Part shown: piece after piece, positions 7,321 through 26,801 of the stretch
Numbering within the stretch: the first letter of the stretch is position 1
Layout of the letters: each line of letters begins with the position of its first letter
Assembly (NCBI GenBank): GCA_000388065.2
Contig: KB932208.1
DNA length: 28,073 bases
Reading direction: 5' to 3' (one strand)
DNA from: Fonticula alba ATCC 38817
Taxonomy: Eukaryota > Protista > Nucleariida
Translations under genes and position numbers: made by a program
The notes under the pieces: model-generated
Told to the model about the DNA's origin: nothing
The model's input: only the letters and a program-made list of their open reading frames with translations
The model's database searches: none

Positions 7321-8740
7321 CTTCTCTTCTTCTTGGTGTTCGGCCGGGGATCGCTGGCCACGACATCACGCGAACCGGGCCGGAGGAAGGCGGGAGGGTC
7401 AGTCGCGCGTGGGAGGCAACAGGGGCAGCAAGACAGGCCCAGGGGATGAGCGGAGGAGGGCGAGGGGGGCGGCGGGCGGGGGAGGGAAANNNNNNNNNNN
7501 NNNNNNNNNNNNNNNNNNNNNNNNNNNNNNNNNNNNNNNNNNNNNNNNNNNNGGGGGGGAGGGAGTGGCGGAGAGTGCTGTTAAGGAGCGCCTCCGCAGC
7601 GGGAAGAGCGAACGACAACAGCCAGTGAAAAACCCGCCCCCCACCACCCGCCGGGGGTGGGGGAGCGGGGGGGCGGGGGGGGGGGAAGAACGACGAAAAA
7701 AGAGAACGCCGGGGGGGAACGCAAATCTGGCGCAACGACGGGAGCCGGTATCGGGATGAACAGCCCGCCGAGTCCCCACCTCCGGTCGTGCTATTCCCCG
7801 GGCGTTGCTAGATTTTTCTTTTCCAACCCAAGCAGGTGTGGCGACGCCCCGGGCAAGGCCCGCACCAGGTGTGCTCCCCCGATCGCCGCGGCCCCTGGAA
7901 ATGTCACACCGGCGCCTGCTGCTGCCACCGCGCCGGGACAGGCAGGGGGGCCGGCGGGAGGGAGGGCAGATCTGCGCGCCCAGCCTGGCCATTGGCCACC
8001 GGGGGGTGCCGTGTCGCGTCCGGAGGGAAGGTGATGGCACGGCGGGATGTGCGTGTGTGTGTGTGTGTGTGTGTCTGTCGAAGCGGGTGGACACGGGGGG
8101 GGGGGGGCGGACATCGACTGGCACCTGAGCACAAAAGTCTACGTGTACATATTCGGAAGATAGAGTCTATTTTGTGTTGGGTACAATCACCCGCGCCGGG
8201 CAGGTCTCATGCTCCTCTCTCCTGAGCGCTTTGTGTGTGCGTGTGTGCGAGGGGGGGTCCTTCACCCTGCCCCCTCCCCCCGGGATACATGGATGGAGGA
8301 GGGGGGGGGGGGATGCGGACGCGTCTGTCGGGGAAAAGGGGTATGGGGTCTTCTGACAAGATGATTTTCGCCAGCTGGCGAGCCGAAAATTGGCAGCCGA
8401 AACCCTCCTGTCATTGGGGCCAAACACCATTCGGATCTACTAATGTAGAGTTGGTGGATGTTACGTTGGGGGCTGGGCCGGGGCTGGAGAGGAGTGGTGG
8501 GAGCTGGCATGCGCGCGCGCGCGCATGTGCATGCGTAGGGCCTGCCCCCCCTCCTTCCGCAGGAGGTCGCGTGCACGTACACACCCACACACACAGACAC
8601 ACACACACGCAGGCCCCTATGCGCAAATGCGTCGGAGAGATGCAGGGGAGAGGGAAAAAAAGAGGAAATGGGGAAATGGGCAAGAAGGGAGGCGCGCGCA
8701 TGACCACGTCCGCCGTGTGGGTGCTGCTTGGCCGGCGATC

Positions 8741-16485: not shown

Positions 16486-18470
16486 TTAGTCGCTCTTGCT
16501 GGAGAGGGCCACGACACCGGGGAGCTGGATGCCACTCAGGAGCTCGAGGCTGGCACCACCACCGGTGGAGACATGGGAGAACTTCTCGGTCAGGCCAAAC
16601 TTGGCGGCCGCGGTGATGGTATCACCACCGCCTGCAGGAGGGGGAGGAGGGGCGGCAAAGCATCAATGGGGAGTGAGTACAGGCGCGGGCCGGCCCCAAA
16701 GGAGCAGGAAGAGCCGGGGCAAAAGGCAAGAGGAACACCAACAGCCATGGACAAGCTGGACGCACAGACAATGGAGGTGGCGCCGTCGGCAGTGGCCGCG
16801 ACCACGGCGTCGGCAATCACACTGGAGCCCTTGGCAAAGGCATCGAACTCGAAGACGCCAGCCGGGCTGGGCACATGACATGCGGAAGGCAGCGATGAAA
16901 GCGGCCGCGAGTGTCAGTCGCGCAAGTGGGCGACCGGCAGGAAAGGGCGAGACACGGGGGGCGGGATGTGGATGTGTAGGCGGGCGCGGGCGCGGGNNNN
17001 NNNNNNGGGGGGGCGGCGGCGGCGTAGGCGCACCCGTTCCAGACAACAGTCTTGGCAGTGCGAATGGCCTTGGCGAAATTCTCCGCGGACTCGCTGCCGA
17101 TGTCCAGGCCCATCATGCCATCGGGAATGCCCGAGGCGTCGGTGGCATGACCGACCGTGGCATCGGGGGCGAAGCTGGCGACACGAGGATGGAGGAGCGA
17201 GGAGGGCAGGGGTGCTGGAGTTAGACCGGAGGGCATCGAGCGGGTGGGAAAGAAGAGCCGCATGCGTACCGGTCGGCGGTCACATAGTCCACCGGGAGGT
17301 GAATGGTGACGCCGCGCTCCTTGGCGCGATCAATGATCTGCTGGCAGAGGCTGGCGGACTCCTCGTCGAAAAGGGAGTTGCCGATCTTGACATTCTCAAT
17401 GGTCTTCTTGAATGCGAAGGCCATGGCGCCACCGATGATCAGCGAGTCGACCAGATCCAGGAGGTGCATGATGAGTTGGATCTTGTCGGACACCTTGGAC
17501 CTGCACAGCAGGGCCGAGGAGTAATCGCGAGACGTCAGCATGGAGTAGCCGAGGCAATGATCGAGAGGGGCAAGGGAGGCCTCGGGAAAGGGGCCACACG
17601 CGGGCATGTGCGCGTAGGACACGTACCCGCCCAGGATGGCAACCAGCGGCCGCTGCGGCCCCTCAAGGACCTTGGAAAAGTAGCGCAGCTCGCGCTCCAT
17701 CAGCAGGCCCGCGGCCCGGATCGGCAGGGACACACCGACAACGGAGCTATCCAAGAATGGGGTCAGTAAGTGCATGGGGGGGGGGGGNNNNNNNNNNNNN
17801 NNNNNNNNNNNNNNNNNNNNNNNNNNNNNNNNNNNNNNNNNNNNNNNNNNNNNNNNNNNNNNNNNNNNNNNNNNNNNNNNNNNNNNNNNNNNNNNNNNNN
17901 NNNNNNNNNNNNNNNNNNNNNNNNNNNNNNNNNNNNNNNNNNNNNNNNNNNNNNNNNNNNNNNNNNNNNNNNNNNNNNNNNNNNNNNNNNNNNNNNNNNN
18001 NNNNNNNNNNNNNNNNNNNNNNNNNNNNNNNNNNNNNNNNNNNNNNNNNNNNNNNNNNNNNNNNNNNNNNNNNNNNNNNNNNNNNNNNNNNNNNNNNNNN
18101 NNNNNNNNNNNNNNNNNNNNNNNNNNNNNNNNNNNNNNNNNNNNNNNNNNNNNNNNNNNNNNNNNNNNNNNGAAGCACGGGCCGAGGAGGGTGGGGTGCC
18201 GATCAAAAAAAAAAGCAGAACAAGCAGCGGAAGCATTCCGGCGTTTACCTATGGGCACGGTGGGCGGCGCCGAAGGCATCATTGATGTAGATGTCGCCAA
18301 AGCTGCTGAGGGCATCGCAGAAGGTCTTGATGTCCTCCTTGGAGGCAGTAAGCTATGTGACACCAGAGGAGGTGGCGCGGGGCGGCGGAGGGAGGGCGCG
18401 AGCGAGAGCCGGAGTGCGAAGGCGAGTGGCGGGTGAGGAAGGGAGCCGTGCTCGGGGGGGGGGCCGGGCC

Positions 18471-18512
<42 letters not shown>

Positions 18513-19013
18513 ATGGATGGGCGAGGGGAGGGGGGCCAAGCATGCCAGCAGGGTGAAACCCACCTTCTTGCCATCGACGACGGACTTGCCCTCCTCGAAG
18601 GGGGAGAAGCGAATGTTCTCCAGCATGAAAACCTGACCATCGGACGCGGCAGACAGCTTGTTGCGGATGGCCTCGCAGTCGGTGGAAATGTTCTCGGTCA
18701 GCAGGGTAACCGAAGACCCGAGCAGGCCGGCCAGGTGCGTGGCCACCGGGGCCAGGGAGTACTTGGGCACGACGCTGCCATCCGGCCGGCCCAGATGGCT
18801 GATCAGGACAATGGCCGCCGGCTTGAGAGCCTGCAGAGCCTGCAGGGTCGGCAGGGTGGCGGTAATGCGGCTGTCATCGGTGATGGTAGCCCCACGACCG
18901 GCCTCGTGCTTCAGGGGGACGTTGAAATCCACGCGCACGAGGACGCGCTTTCCGGCCACCTGCTCCGGCTTGATGTCGGAGAGGCTGAGCTTGTTGGACA
19001 GGAGGGTGGACAT
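16486..19013 (-). CDS. PGK1: Phosphoglycerate kinase
   Basis: Exons 19013-18564, 18352-18249, 17746-17627, 17500-17270, 17174-17034, 16866-16766, 16631-16486 total 1293 nt (430 aa). Motifs [64 protein letters not shown]. The gaps lie inside introns 2 and 5. Confidence 0.98.
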
Positions 19014-20897
19014 GGCTGGACGAGGCAAGGAACGGGACAAGGGGAGAGCGCGAGCAAAGAGCTGCGCGCGGCAGGGCGTCCAATTGAACAACGCCAAGGG
19101 GGGATGCAATTCGGTGGGGGGGGGTGAGAGTGGCAGTCAGAGGCAGGGGAGACAAGTGTCGTGGGCATTCCGGGNNNNNNNNNNNNNNNNNNNNNNNNNN
19201 NNNNNNNNNNNNNNNNNNGCTGTCTCGCTGGCGCCTGCATGCCAGTCGAGGTGTCAAAGGAACACTGGGGGAGAGTATGAAAGAGGAAAGATACCTGCAT
19301 CAGGGGGAGGGAGAGCGGGGGAGGGGGGCTGTCGGGGCAGCTGGTGACTCTCGAAGGGCCAGTTTCTCTTCTTCCTCTTCCGCGCCTTACTCGCGCCACA
19401 CACACACACACACACACACACACACCATGCGAGGCACATGCATTTTCGCGCACATCCTGGTCCCGTCCGGATCCCTGTCCGTCTCACGGGGGGCCTCCGC
19501 CGCGAAAAGGATCTGGCAACCCCGCAGGCCCTCCTGCAGATGCTCTGTTGTGATGATACCCCGATTGACATGGCGACGCTAGTGGCAATGCATTTGTCAG
19601 GACACCCCGCGCCACCGGTGGCTAGACGGGACGCGTCAGCACCTGGGCACCGGCAGAAAGGGGGGCATTCTCTGGAGCCTCTCCTGCGAAGCCCTCCCCC
19701 GCCCCCCCCCCCGCCCCGGTCCGCTGGCCAGACTTCTGCCTGGTACGCTCCGACCGGCGCCCTCCCCGCCTCCCAGGGGCTGACACCCAAACTCCCACAC
19801 CGGACGTGGGAATCTTCCCGCACATTTCGCGGATGATGCCACTCCCGGGGGGGACGAACTCCCATCGGACGCCCCGAGCAAGCGGTCTGTCCGCCGGCAT
19901 GAAACCTCTCGCCCGGGGGGGGAAGGGGGACAGGGCCGGGGCGTGTCCCCGGCTGGCTGCCCCAGCACCGGCTCCCGGCTCCTCGGCGCGGCAGGGGGGA
20001 ATGTCTGGCCTGGGGGGAGGGAATATCCCGCGATGCGCGAGGTGCCTTCCCCCCCCCCCCCCCCGAATGGAAGCGCCCCGACGGTCTGACGGCGCACGCA
20101 CGGCCCATCGAAAGACAAGGGTATATTGGTTGGGGACGGGCGGGGCGCGCGCGCGGCATGAACATATGCCAGCGCGCGTCCGACGCGCACATCCACACCA
20201 GACATGAGAGGGGGAAGAAGAAAGAGGGAGAGAGGGACAAATAACAAGGGACATGGACACAAGTGGAGTGAAGGGTGGTGGAGATATGGAGCAGGGCCGC
20301 GGGGGACACATGCCAAGCCGGCAGAGAACACACGCCTGGGGGGGGAGGGGGAGGCGGGGGGAAGGGTGGCAGACCGCTCCCGGGACGTGTGCGCTGCTGG
20401 CCGCCGACCTGCGAGGGGAAGAGAAGGGGTGTTGCGTTGCTGGGCGCGAGGGTGTCCTGGGCACGACTGGGACTGGAGCCGGCGCCGGGGCCACACACAC
20501 ACGCGCGCGCGCACGCACGCACGCGCGTCCGGAGAAAAAAAACAAGTACAGAGCGCCGCACAATCCAGGGGGAGAGAGAGAGAGAGAGGGAGAGAGGGAG
20601 AGCGGGAAGAAGGGAGAACGGGAAGAGCATGCACGCGCGCATGGGCCAAAGCATATGAACACGCGCACACGCACGCATACATACGCGCACACGGTGCTAG
20701 ATCGGCCACGCCACGAGACAGCATCTAATTGTGCTGCCGTAGGGGAAACCTGGCGGTGTGTGGCGCATGCATTGCAGCTTACGCGCATGGCCCCCCGAGA
20801 CCTTGCCGCGGTGCTCCGCCTTCGCCTTCTCTGTGGGGAGGGGCATGGTACACTACTGACTGTTGAATGTTGGGAAAGGAATAGGCACCGCGCGTTC

Positions 20898-21096
20898 TTA
20901 CCTAAGGAGGATGAATTCCGCGGCGAAATCCCTCGACATTCCGGGGTGAACCCCATGCTGCAGACCAAGTGCGAAGACGTAATTCCTGATCGGTGGGGAG
21001 GAGGGGCCGGGGCCGATTGGGTGGTTAATGAAAGAGCATGAATGGGCGGCCAGGCCCCTGCGGGCATGGACAAGACACCGCGGATGGAAAGGGAAA

Positions 21097-21139
<43 letters not shown>

Positions 21140-24100
21140 TGGAAAGGGCCACGCACTGAAGCCAGACAAGCAGCTCGGGCAGATGGCGCGAGGCCCAGAA
21201 GCCAATCCGACAGCCGCTGTGCCGGCGCTGAACGACCACACCATTGATCGCAAGATCCGGGTGCTCGGCAGCCAGGGCGGCGGTGGACAGGCGCAGGGCA
21301 TCGCCGAGACGAGGACCGCCGAGAATCGGCGACAGAACCTCATGCGTCAGGGCCAAGTCAGCGGGGGACACCGGCTGGCGCATCTGCTTCAGGACCGACA
21401 TCATGGCGTTCGCACGGTCCACATCGGCTGGGCGATGCGCATGCAGAGTGGACAGCAGCGTGCCGGACACGGCACCGAGGGTCATGAAGTCCAGGAAGGC
21501 CTCGCGCAGGGATGTGAAGCTTCGCTCATGCGAGCGGTCGTCGGCCGCGAAGGGGATGAACACGAAATAGTGACAGCCCTTCAGGCAAAAAAAAGCGGGG
21601 ACACAGGAGGGGGGGAGGAAAGAGAGAGGGGGAGACGAAGCGGCGAGGGGGCAAAGTGGCTGATGTCAGAAAAGCCGATGCATAGGGGGGAGAGAGAGAG
21701 AGAGAGAGAGAAAGAAAGAGGCAGGGGGGGGGAGAAATCAAGAAAGAAGAGACATACCCCGCTGTTTTGCGGGTGGCTCCAGTCCGGGAGGATGTCATTG
21801 CGGAACATCAGCATCTGAGAGCGGAAGGGGAACTCCTGGGATACCGGGCTCTCGAGATTAGACAGGACGGTGAACATCTCGGCCGGGGTCTGCATCACGG
21901 CCAGCGGGACCATGCACCGGTTGTACAACTCGTCAGCCGGCAGGCGCAGCGCCTGTCCCGGGCTCTGCAGGGCCGCCGCGGCCTGAGCCGCGGCCACCTG
22001 CTGCTGCAAGCCCGCCTGCTCTTGGACATTCGGCAGGAAGTACACGGTCCAGGGGAAGCGGAAAGGCTGCCGCAGGGCAGGGCTGTCCCCGGACCGGGGC
22101 TCGGCCGGCAGGAAGTCCACCGCAGGTGGCGGGCTGGCCGGGTAGGCCCGAGCCACGATGGCAGCCACGGTGGCCGCCGAGCATGGCCGATCGGCCGGGG
22201 CCACCGCCGAGAAGGACTCCCCAGCCCCAGAACAGGGGCCAGTTCCCGGGTGCTGGAGCTGCAGGCCTTGCTGCTGCTGCTGCTGCTGAACCAGAGACCC
22301 GCGCTCGAAGAGAGTTGGCGCCGGGGCTCCCGAGGCCGAGGGGCCTGGGATGTCCGAACGGGAGATGCCGGCAAAGTCGCGACCGGCGGTGCGCCCGGGG
22401 CCAGCCGTACCGGCTGCCGAGGAGGGCGTGCCAATCGCCGGGTTGCCGCTGCCGGCTGCGACGCCGGGGGCCGAGCTGAGGGAACTGGTGACGAAAGGAC
22501 CACCACGACCGAGCTCACGGCCGAGGGACGATGCGGAGCTGGGAACCGGGCTCGAGACCGAGGCGGAAGAGGTGGCCGAGCTGCTGCTGCCGCCGCCGCC
22601 GCCGCCGATGTTCTCACCACGACCAAAGGGATTGGCGGGCTTGTCGGTCAGGGTGGCCGGGGCCAGAGGAGCCGGCGCAGCAGCAGCACCGGCCGCCGGG
22701 GCATCGGCAGCCGGAGTGGCGGCATTTGCGACGGCAGCCATGGTCGCAGGCGTGACGGAAGTGGCAGAGGCAGGCGGCGAGGCCTGGCGCGCCGGGCGTG
22801 GCAGGCCCAGGCCGGTGATCGGCTGCAGGAGCGAGCGGCTGGGACTGATGGCGGCGGCCGGGGAAAGGGCGCTGGCCGCCACGGCCGAGCCGGAAGTGCC
22901 GGTGGTAGCGGCCGACGGGCCAGCCGAGGAGGCGGACGGGGACAAGGAGGAGGAGGAGGAGGAGGAAGAAGAAGAGCAAGTCGCGGGCGATGCCGTCGAG
23001 TTCAGGAGATCCTGCGGGTGAGGGGCACCACTGCCGTCGGTGTCCTCGATGACCGGGACCCACACACCGGAGTCCAGCTGACGCATGGTGGACATGGTGA
23101 TGGTCTCGACCGTCGGCGTGGCAACATACACCCCGGAGGGGGTGGCCTCCAGGTTGTCGGTAACCTCGTAGACGGGCTCGGGCCGGGCAACTGGACGACT
23201 GGCCGTTGGCCGAGCCGGAGTCACTGGGGCCGGGGCCGAAGCCGAAGCCGAAGCCGAAGCCGAAGCCGGAGCGGCGTCGCCACCGCCCACCGGGGCCGGA
23301 GTGGCCATCGGCCCAGCCGAGGCAGCCACCGAATCGACCTCGGCCTCATCGGCCACGGGCCGGGATGCGGCCACATGGCCGACTTCCCCCTGCAGGGTCT
23401 GGATGCTGATGGCCTGCGAGGACCAGGACTCCTCGATGAGGTTGGCTGCCGAGGAGGGCTCCGCCATCGACACGTGCGACCGCGCGGACGGGGCATCCGC
23501 CTCGGCGGAGGTCGAGCCTGGTGACGCGGAGGAAGTGGCCCCGCCGAGGGCACGCTTCCCGGCAAGCAGCATGAGCGGCGACTGCCGGGGGAGCACCCCA
23601 CTGGAGGAGGACGAAGAGCCGAGGGGGGCTGCCGCGTCCGCCGGAGAGGAGGCCCGGCTGCCGCCGCGAGTGCGCTGCTTGGAGCCAGGCGCCTGGTGCT
23701 GCTGCTGCTGAGGGCCCGAGGGGCCAACGCTCGGCGCCACTGTGGCCGTGGTGGCCGAGATGCCAGGACGCGCGTCCGAAGTGGCAGCACCCCGCGCGGC
23801 CGGGGGAGCCGACGCCGAGACGGTCGATGTGAAGCTCGAGGGGGAATCCCGCGGGGCCAGGTCCGGAGACATTGCGGGGGCAGCCTTCTTGGCGACTGGC
23901 GGCTGCGGCTGCGGCTGCGGCTGCGGCTGCGNNNNNNNNNNNNNNNNNNNNNNNNNNNNNNNNNNNNNNNNNNNNNNNNNNNNNNNNNNNNNNNNNNNNN
24001 NNNNNNNNNNNNNNNNNNNNNNNNNNNNNNNNNNNNNNNNNNNNNNNNNNNNNNNNNNNNNNNNNNNNNNNNNNNNNNNNNNNNNNNNNNNNNNNNNNNN

Positions 24101-25802
24101 NNNNNNNNNNNNNNNNNNNNNNNNNNNNNNNNNNNNCTGCGACTGCGACTGCGACTGCGACTGCGACTGCGGCGGTGGCTGCATATGCGGCAGGGAATGC
24201 ATATGCGGCTGCGGCTGCTGCGGCTGCTGCTCGACCATCATCTGACGCGGGAGGTATGCCCCAGGAACTGGGGGGTAGTGCTGCTGCATGGACACAGGAG
24301 GATACTGCGGATGAGGGAAGGACTGCGGAGGCGCCAACAACGTGTGGTGGTGAGCATGGGGATGGTGCGCCGGCAGGAAGGCCCCCTGCTGAGCATGGTG
24401 GGGCATAGCTGGGTAGCCGGGCTGGGGCGGCAGCAGAACCAGATGAGAGTGCTGTCCGGGGTACGGATGGAGCAACAGTTGCTGCTGCTGCTGCTGCTGT
24501 TGCTGCTGGGACTGCGACTGCGGCTGCGGCTGCGGCTGCGGCTGGGATGGTGGCTGCTGGTAAGTCGAGTGGAACATGTGCTGCTGGCCGCGGCCGGTGG
24601 TCGGTGGGGCAAACCCGGCCCCCGGGTGGCCCTGACCGGAGAGCGGGGCAAATGCCCCGCCAGTCGGGTGCGGCCTCACGGGGTGATGCGTGTCCGGCCC
24701 GGCCACTGGTGGCCGAGCATGGTGGTGCTGTGCCGCGAGCGGCCGAACTCCTGGGACCCCGGGACCGGGAGCCATGTGCTCGGCAGCCGCCGGGGCCGGT
24801 GAGGGGGTGCGGCCATGGCCACCGGCACGCTCAGCAGCACGCTCGGCGGCCCTGTTGCGCCTGTTGCGCTGCTTGCCGGAGGGAGGCGCCGATCCGCCGG
24901 GCGCAGGGGACGCCTGCTTCGGCGAGTCGGCCACCACCGGAGTGGCGGCGCCCTTGCCCTTGGCCGGCTTGTCCTTGCGGGGCTGCGACTGCGACTGCGA
25001 CTGCGACTGCGACTGCGACTGCGACTGCGACTGCGACTGCGACTGCGACTGCGACTGCGGGGATTGGCCGGCATGGGCACCGGTGTCGGGGCGGCCCTGC
25101 TTGTCCTTCCGACCGGAACGAGAGCCTCCGGCCTTTGGGCCCTTTTCGGGCCTGTCGGGCTTTTCAGCCTTATCAGCCTTATCGGCCTTTTGGGAGGTGG
25201 GGGCGGGAGAATCCGGGGTTGGAGACGAGTGCGCCTGCTGCTGGCGCTGCTTGCGTGAAGCCTTTGGCTGCTGGCCCTGCTGCTGGCCCTGCTGCTGATT
25301 CTGCGGCTGGCTCTGGGGCTGGCTCGGTTTGCCAGCGGCAGAGGAGCCGGCCTGGCCGCGGGACTTGCCCTGCTTGCCGCCAGGCGAAGGGCCACCAGCC
25401 TTCGCAGGGGCATCCTTCGCAGAGCGAGACCCCTTACCACCGGAAGGGCCCCTGCCAGCGGCATCCGCAGGGGAGACACCCGGGACGGTGGAAGGGGAAG
25501 AGGCGGCGGCCGCGGCCGCGGCCGCGGCACTGGTGCTCGTTGTCCGGCGCGCGGAGAAGGCCAGACCGACGGTTGGCTCGCCGGTCCCCGGGGCCGGGGA
25601 CATGCCAGAGCCCTTGCCCCCACGGGGGGCATGGCTCTTGCCGCCGGCCGAGCTCGCGGCAGGAGCCGCAGCAGGCGCCTTCGGGCGGGCTGTCGATCCC
25701 GTGCTTCCGGCCTTGGGCGCGGCGGCAGGGGGAGTAGGTTGCATGACGGAAACGGGTCTCTCCCGGGTCGGGTGAGGGGAGGGGGGCTGGGTGATGCTCA
25801 AG
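20898..25802 (-). CDS. Divergent eIF4E-family protein with ~1,200 aa low-complexity N-terminal region (~1,500 aa; termini uncertain)
   Basis: Large exon 25802(or ATG 25744)-21758 crossing a 205-N gap, then 21578-21157 and 20985-20898(TAA). The C-terminal part aligns by eye to eIF4E: QPFRFPWTVYF (cf. HPLQNRWALWF), MFRNDILPDWSHPQNSGG (cf. LFKDGIEPMWEDEKNKRGG), INGVVVQRRHSGCRIGFW (cf. VCGAVVNVRAKGDKIAIW). An acceptor at 25803 implies possible upstream exon(s) in the 25878-26801 gap. Confidence 0.75.
24983..25059 (-). repeat. Coding hexamer repeat (CAGTCG)n encoding (QS)n; related QP and QS arrays flank the 23932-24136 gap and an (AS)n array lies at ~23235-23266
   Basis: About 13 CTGCGA units on the + strand, in frame with gene 7. 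Confidence 0.92.
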
Positions 25803-25877: not shown

Positions 25878-26801
25878 NNNNNNNNNNNNNNNNNNNNNNN
25901 NNNNNNNNNNNNNNNNNNNNNNNNNNNNNNNNNNNNNNNNNNNNNNNNNNNNNNNNNNNNNNNNNNNNNNNNNNNNNNNNNNNNNNNNNNNNNNNNNNNN
26001 NNNNNNNNNNNNNNNNNNNNNNNNNNNNNNNNNNNNNNNNNNNNNNNNNNNNNNNNNNNNNNNNNNNNNNNNNNNNNNNNNNNNNNNNNNNNNNNNNNNN
26101 NNNNNNNNNNNNNNNNNNNNNNNNNNNNNNNNNNNNNNNNNNNNNNNNNNNNNNNNNNNNNNNNNNNNNNNNNNNNNNNNNNNNNNNNNNNNNNNNNNNN
26201 NNNNNNNNNNNNNNNNNNNNNNNNNNNNNNNNNNNNNNNNNNNNNNNNNNNNNNNNNNNNNNNNNNNNNNNNNNNNNNNNNNNNNNNNNNNNNNNNNNNN
26301 NNNNNNNNNNNNNNNNNNNNNNNNNNNNNNNNNNNNNNNNNNNNNNNNNNNNNNNNNNNNNNNNNNNNNNNNNNNNNNNNNNNNNNNNNNNNNNNNNNNN
26401 NNNNNNNNNNNNNNNNNNNNNNNNNNNNNNNNNNNNNNNNNNNNNNNNNNNNNNNNNNNNNNNNNNNNNNNNNNNNNNNNNNNNNNNNNNNNNNNNNNNN
26501 NNNNNNNNNNNNNNNNNNNNNNNNNNNNNNNNNNNNNNNNNNNNNNNNNNNNNNNNNNNNNNNNNNNNNNNNNNNNNNNNNNNNNNNNNNNNNNNNNNNN
26601 NNNNNNNNNNNNNNNNNNNNNNNNNNNNNNNNNNNNNNNNNNNNNNNNNNNNNNNNNNNNNNNNNNNNNNNNNNNNNNNNNNNNNNNNNNNNNNNNNNNN
26701 NNNNNNNNNNNNNNNNNNNNNNNNNNNNNNNNNNNNNNNNNNNNNNNNNNNNNNNNNNNNNNNNNNNNNNNNNNNNNNNNNNNNNNNNNNNNNNNNNNNN
26801 N
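25878..26801. other. Assembly gap (largest); other gaps at 7490-7552, 16997-17006, 17788-18171, 19175-19218, 23932-24136
   Basis: Runs of N, mostly flanked by homopolymers or microsatellites. Confidence 1.

Follow-up and report, generated by a model that had tools for sequence, protein, structure and literature searches.

Can a member of the eIF4E family dispense with the glutamate that reads the guanine of the cap, and, if it can, what is left for such a protein to do? eIF4E is the textbook cap reader, and its family is classified by the state of a handful of residues. In the classification of Joshi et al. (2005; PMC1260017), W102, E103 and W166 were identical in all the classified members and W73 was nearly universal; W73 and V69 were required for the binding of eIF4G and of the 4E-BPs. 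Class III was defined there by a kept W43 and by the replacement of W56 by Cys or Tyr. In Class II, W56 is replaced by Tyr or Phe and W43 by Tyr, Phe or Leu, except that fungal Class II keeps W43. A subsequent analysis of 1,462 fungal eIF4Es (Hernandez et al. 2024; PMC11791286) called E103 and W166 invariant in all eukaryotes studied, added the change of K162 to Ile, Val or Leu to the definition of Class II, and found both Class I and Class II in six of the six fungal phyla studied. It also described the F-Classes IV-VII, in which W56 is replaced by Tyr, R112 and K162 are changed as well, and the proteins bear insertions along with extensions that can reach 900 residues; most of the extended fungal-class eIF4Es failed to complement yeast (PMC11791286).

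The locus that raises the question lies in a window of 28,073 nucleotides of GC-rich eukaryotic DNA (G000:C8:843245-871317), part of a 31.3-Mb assembly. The genome is that of Fonticula alba, whose lineage is sister to the fungi. A sequence-only reading of the window had proposed that positions 20898-22075 encode an eIF4E domain that has lost key residues for the binding of both the cap and eIF4G. Here, we examine the structure of this gene, the degree to which its domain can be aligned to known eIF4Es, and the functions that its residues would allow.

Gene structure and transcript evidence

The interval 20898-22075 (minus strand, like all the features of this gene given below) is the 3' end of a transcribed and correctly spliced three-exon gene. 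A 2052-base RNA contig, present in four of four runs, joins position 21758 to 21578 and 21157 to 20985, and both gaps are minus-strand GT..AG introns with a (CT)n tract: intron A, of 179 bases (21579-21757), and intron B, of 171 bases (20986-21156). Thereafter the contig continues unspliced to 20610. This RNA evidence consists of contigs from four runs of one study, and is informative on presence and splicing, not on the level of expression. Since the introns are mapped by RNA and the TAA stop lies at 20898-20900, the interval proposed earlier coincides exactly with the end of the gene that encodes the domain and includes the introns; its other limit, 22075, lies a short way upstream of QPFRFPWTVYF, the motif of the first strand. 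The coding segments of the eIF4E-like domain, for about 275 residues in all, are thus 21758-22075, 21157-21578 and 20901-20985.

As delimited by Pfam, phmmer and hhalign, the N-terminal half of the domain forms the end of exon 1 (21758-22084), which closes with NSG in phase 0 at 21758; intron A interrupts the conserved GG that precedes the R112 and W113 positions. Exon 2 (21157-21578) begins with GCHYFVF, the presumed strand 4, continues with a helix, an insertion of some 65-70 residues and the beta5-beta6 motif; its 3' end is in phase 2. The coding part of exon 3 (20898-20985) supplies the last 28 residues (NYVFALGLQ...EFILLR) and the stop. The third-position GC content is 0.88, 0.78 and 0.66 in exons 1, 2 and 3, and the introns have a GC content of 0.55-0.60. 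The 3' untranslated region is at least as long as the part covered by the RNA contig (20610-20897). A separate RNA contig of 388 bases lies at 20213-20462, about 150 bases past the end of the 2,052-base contig, and a simple repeat (20463-20609) separates the two; the 3' untranslated region may extend to about 690 bases, or the shorter contig may be another small transcript.

The encoded protein has about 1,500 residues, of which about 1,240 are of low complexity and precede the very divergent eIF4E-family domain. An open frame of 1,406 codons (21581-25801) extends into the domain-coding interval; its mechanical start is 25801, with the first ATG at 25744. The position of the true 5' end is uncertain because a run of 924 N (25878-26801) lies just upstream. 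A second run, of 205 N (23932-24136), falls inside the frame between SQ and QP dipeptide repeats, and the frame is open across it. These are two of the six N runs in the window, the others being at 7490-7552, 16997-17006, 17788-18171 and 19175-19218. By the list of open reading frames, its composition and Pfam, the low-complexity region occupies 22085-25801 of exon 1; it is made up of Ala (17%), Ser (15%), Pro (15%), Gly (10%) and Gln (9%), and is probably disordered. A Pfam search of the 1,406-codon frame returned no domain besides IF4E, and no YxxxxL-phi (4E-binding) motif was found in the N-terminal region.

The two halves of the domain and their residues

The first half of the domain is, by profile and pairwise comparison, homologous to eIF4E. 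Exon 1 alone matches the Pfam IF4E family (PF01652) with 22.9 bits (E 8e-5, profile positions 2-73), a score below the curated cut-off of 28.7 bits that is that of a single exon and not of the spliced domain. When it was compared with solved structures by phmmer, exon 1 was aligned to yeast eIF4E (E 2e-4) and was also matched to the eIF4E structures of Schistosoma and Chaetomium. A comparison by hhalign with a profile built in this analysis gave P 9e-4 and reproduced the register between V69 and E103; this alignment stops short of W56. The register of W102 and E103, and of these two residues only, was also obtained by a local hmmsearch.

On this register most of the substitutions proposed earlier for the first half are borne out. 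The alignment to yeast eIF4E places Tyr at W56 (codon 21923-21925), and phmmer and hhalign both place Phe at W73 (21872-21874). At the centre of the pocket the codons TGG AGC (21776-21781) encode the kept W102 (21779-21781) and, at the position of E103, a serine (21776-21778); phmmer, the local hmmsearch and hhalign concur on both, and in the phmmer alignment PDWSHP stands opposite PEWEDE. None of the eight residues that follow W102 is acidic, and an Asp directly precedes it. The (S/T)VxxFW motif of the dorsal surface reads TPAEMF, so that by phmmer and hhalign V69 is replaced by Pro as well; together with QPF in place of the HPL motif, the changes on this surface are H37Q, V69P, F72M and W73F. 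A kept W43, W46>Y and H37>Q agree with this register and are covered by the Pfam match (profile positions 2-73), and we regard them as plausible but less securely placed. The first strand with W43 and W46 gave no significant match when compared alone with the mini-profile described below (533 of 3000 shuffles scored equally well or better). Between the positions of W46 and W56, the loop in this half of the domain is lengthened by an A/Q-rich insertion of about 30 residues.

Neither exon 2 nor its sub-pieces were matched to eIF4E when Pfam and the PDB sequences were searched. A mini-profile (alignment A1) was built from the near-canonical eIF4E paralogue of the same genome, referred to below as the C5 paralogue, and from four of five metagenome loci with typical eIF4E genes; the five loci came from a metagenome scan with that paralogue as the query. 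With the HMMER filters off, hmmsearch aligned INGVVVQRRHSGCRIGFW of exon 2 to the ICGVVVDIRNKVDKISIW block, in the expected place and with 9.1-9.2 bits, a score reached by none of 3000 shuffles. The comparison of this motif with the beta5-beta6 block by hhalign gave P 1.7e-4, and when all 180 open stretches of the window that have 100 or more residues were scored against the mini-profile, the frames of the two exons took the top two ranks. By these comparisons, the second half can be recognised as eIF4E in its beta5-beta6 block. The motif has 18 residues, spans strands 5 and 6 (21195-21248), and contains R157, a basic residue (Arg) at the position of K162, and W166 (21195-21197), as had been read earlier.

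The rest of the second half is less securely aligned. Because the RNA-proven splice junction rebuilds the conserved GG (NSG|GCHYF), the residues that follow it can be read as R112>C and W113>H; of the Tyr or His formerly suggested at W113, it is the His that appears plausible, and both readings are weaker than those of the beta5-beta6 motif. W130>F was read by eye alone, in the helix of exon 2. The insertion between helix 2 and strand 5 (21255-21452), predicted by AlphaFold2 to be helical, is present in the mature RNA and hence is not an unrecognised intron. An AlphaFold2 model of exon 2 alone has a pLDDT of 41, which is unreliable and too low for a fold search; the order of its elements (a short strand, a helix, the four helices of the insertion and a beta hairpin) is compatible with eIF4E.

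The eight Trp positions (43, 46, 56, 73, 102, 113, 130 and 166) are consequently occupied by W, Y, Y, F, W, H, F and W, those at 113 and 130 being assigned by position or by eye. The previous count of only three remaining Trp (W43, W102 and W166) was correct; seven of the eight positions are aromatic and the eighth is His. Of the cap contacts, the domain has W102, R157, W166 and, as Arg, K162; the change of W56 to Tyr is conservative, and those of E103 to Ser and R112 to Cys are not; both motifs for the binding of eIF4G and the 4E-BPs are altered (TPAEMF, QPF). An acidic residue at E103 and a Trp at 73 are absent from the alignments, which have Ser and Phe in these places. The earlier view that the domain differs from a canonical eIF4E, which binds both cap and eIF4G, therefore retains its force, as far as E103>S, R112>C and TPAEMF can indicate.

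The term “pseudo-4E” that had been attached to the domain is a different matter: the divergence is real, but the label goes too far for a domain with seven of eight aromatic positions, with the Y56/W102 pair, W166 and R157/R162 kept, and with in-frame splicing. It nonetheless calls for a consideration of decay, that is, of a functionless gene copy or an annotation artefact in which the eIF4E-like residues are remnants. The single-exon Pfam scores under the family cut-off would suit such a history, as would the isolation of the domain: an exhaustive HMMER search with exon 1 found no homologue or orthologue of it among 1.84 billion representative proteins, and a protein-language search, made with the features of the ESM Atlas, yielded nothing usable for either exon 1 or exon 2. 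Word-index protein searches with the exon 1 domain region, in two length windows, also gave no match, nor did one with the canonical paralogue. The HMMER search did return two hits for exon 1, one a protein with cadherin-like repeats and the other a protein of low complexity, and these were rejected as spurious repeat matches to the A/Q-rich loop. Against decay, the gene is transcribed, its two introns are precisely removed and its frame is intact to the stop; its GC3 is high, the aromatic character of the Trp positions is maintained and the beta5-beta6 motif is significant. We consider decay very unlikely; the pattern of residues looks like that of a remodelled fold, not of a decaying one.

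Class signatures and possible functions

To which of the known eIF4Es could such a protein be compared? It had been stated that the residue pattern matches none of the signatures of Classes I, II and III, and this is formally wrong. Class I has Trp at both 43 and 56, and position 56 is Tyr here; however, W43 with Y56 is the signature of Class III and of fungal Class II (PMC1260017). Membership in the Class III clade is nonetheless unlikely outside the Metazoa, to which this clade belongs (PMC1260017, PMC11791286). For Class II, W43/Y56 fits the fungal form, while position 162 is Arg instead of Ile, Val or Leu, and both E103 and W73 are changed. Members of Class III and fungal Class II all keep W102, E103 and W166, and almost all of them keep W73; they lack long extensions and core insertions. 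On the alignments above, the departure of the Fonticula domain from the recognised classes lies at E103, at W73, in its two insertions and in its giant N-terminal extension.

The fungal Class II signature is the starting point for an alternative in which the gene encodes a much-diverged Class II (4EHP-like) eIF4E, binding the cap weakly without eIF4G and acting as a cap-competing repressor recruited through its long N-terminal region. It would be in keeping with the presence of Classes I and II in all six fungal phyla studied (PMC11791286), given the two IF4E genes found in this genome, and with the retention of W102, W166, R157 and R162. Class II proteins, however, keep E103 and W73 and by the definition of 2024 have Ile, Val or Leu at 162, where this domain has Arg; moreover, the PDB search with exon 1 returned no 4EHP structure, even with E values up to 10 admitted. 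We regard this alternative as unlikely.

Giant, insertion-bearing and degenerate eIF4E paralogues are already known from fungi (F-Classes VI and VII), from trypanosomatids and from Toxoplasma (eIF4E3), to which the present gene adds an example from the nucleariid side. The general phenomenon is therefore a known one, and what is unusual is that an expressed member lacks E103. F-Classes VI and VII are Holomycota paralogues that resemble the window gene in having Tyr (or Trp or Phe) at 56, core insertions and N-terminal extensions of hundreds of residues; they do not complement yeast cdc33 (PMC11791286). In F-Class VII R112 is replaced by Ser or Ala and K162 by Asn, Ser or Ile; the R112>C of the window gene is likewise non-conservative, and its position 162 is basic. 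Unlike the Fonticula domain, with its Ser, both of these F-classes retain E103, and they also retain W102, R157 and W166. The window gene further differs from them in its longer extension (about 1,240 residues) and its second insertion, of about 65-70 residues.

Toxoplasma gondii eIF4E3 (TGME49_312560), compared here by its published description, is a protein of 214 kDa whose aromatic residues and eIF4G motif are degenerate (Holmes et al. 2024; PMC11237481). Like the window gene it is very large, has a degenerate IF4E domain and exists beside a canonical paralogue, eIF4E1, which alone bound the m7G resin with high affinity in that study (PMC11237481). Our first guess, that the window gene was an apicomplexan orthologue of this protein, was dropped once Fonticula alba was known to be the source genome; the Apicomplexa are an unrelated lineage, and the likeness is one of analogy and not of orthology.

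All that can be said of binding by the divergent domain we infer from its residues. We think it rather probable that the gene encodes a non-canonical member of the eIF4E family that retains the fold and the stacking and phosphate-binding pocket, that has given up guanine reading and canonical eIF4G binding, and that takes part in the regulation or scaffolding of mRNPs, general translation being served by the C5 paralogue. The domain would retain the cupped-hand fold and a stacking pocket formed by Y56/W102, W166, R157 and R162. With the guanine-reading Glu (now Ser) and R112 (now Cys) lost and the dorsal partner surface rebuilt (H37Q, V69P, F72M and W73F), it would probably bind the m7G cap weakly or not at all and would not join eIF4G via the canonical motif; for the same reasons general translation would probably be left to the other paralogue. 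Its likeliest role would be that of a regulatory or scaffolding mRNP component, in which the eIF4E-like module might provide a specialised contact with an RNA end or a protein, and the giant repeat-rich region might provide multivalent interactions. Given that E103, a contact reported to be the same in every eukaryote studied, is lost, the domain probably has a job other than the gripping of the cap.

Several observations speak against parts of this reading. W56>Y alone does not abolish cap binding, and Class II proteins carry the same change. W73>F stays aromatic, and the documented disruptive replacements at this position are only non-aromatic ones. An acidic residue, the Asp directly before W102, is close at hand. 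Finally, the retention of W102, W166, R157 and R162 argues for continued selection on a pocket for nucleotide or phosphate.

The last of these points lends itself to a further explanation, that of a pocket with a changed specificity, which might accommodate a different 5' end (a hypermethylated, an unmethylated or a non-guanosine cap) or some other ligand that stacks on aromatic residues. The domain has lost the base-reading residue but kept the stacking pair, W166 and two basic phosphate contacts, and the eIF4Es of Giardia and of nematodes have altered cap preferences. We nevertheless consider this quite unlikely: it would depend on a single sequence, with no orthologues to show that the Ser is conserved, and the alternative ligand is purely hypothetical. 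A bolder proposal, of similarly low probability, is that of an eIF4E-fold module devoid of guanine recognition, the first member to lack the Glu reported as invariant, with a new specificity for a 5' end or a ligand and fused to a repeat region of about 1,240 residues that drives the assembly of RNA granules.

The serine at E103 in an expressed family member shows that this supposedly fixed contact can disappear from a domain whose stacking and phosphate contacts persist, and the domain offers a natural test of the rest of the pocket without guanine reading. Because the finding comes from a single sequence, for which the searches returned no orthologue that would reveal whether the unusual residues are conserved, its weight is moderate.

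The second eIF4E and other loci

Searched with the Pfam family, with the canonical paralogue and with alignment A1, the genome yielded only one other IF4E locus, the C5 paralogue at G000:C5:451791-452324, which is near-canonical and of which a single exon scores 65.7 bits on Pfam IF4E. BLASTP between the C5 paralogue and the divergent gene detected no significant similarity. Both nevertheless have an insertion in the loop that separates position W46 from position W56, Ala/Pro-rich in the C5 paralogue; both also begin the beta5 motif with ING and possess a long low-complexity segment, which in the C5 paralogue is a tail. They differ in that the C5 paralogue retains W43 together with W56, TIEDFW, W102-E103, R112, W130 and W166, of which the divergent gene has altered W56, the TIEDFW motif, E103, R112 and W130.

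Other residues are changed in the C5 paralogue itself: W46 and W113 are both replaced by Phe, and the Arg of R157 is probably missing. In the surrounding locus (L001, G000:C5:450507-453824, minus, about 1285-2290) an intron stays open in frame; the open frame has 536 codons overall, and a Gly/Ser-rich C-terminal tail runs past the end of the listed frame of 415 codons. Two metagenome contigs, L004 (Ga0247628_1006761, 515-1159) and L008 (Ga0170475_133682919, 451-969), carry intron-free canonical eIF4E coding sequences that are complete or nearly so. L008 has WEH, not WED, at W102, and its beta5 motif begins with ING..RR, as in the window gene.

The downstream neighbour of the divergent gene in the window (17221-19320, minus strand) is a phosphoglycerate kinase gene, matched by Pfam PGK with E 1e-30 on two pieces of open reading frame; the N run at 17788-18171 lies inside it, and RNA confirms its introns at about 18353-18563 and 19062-19294.
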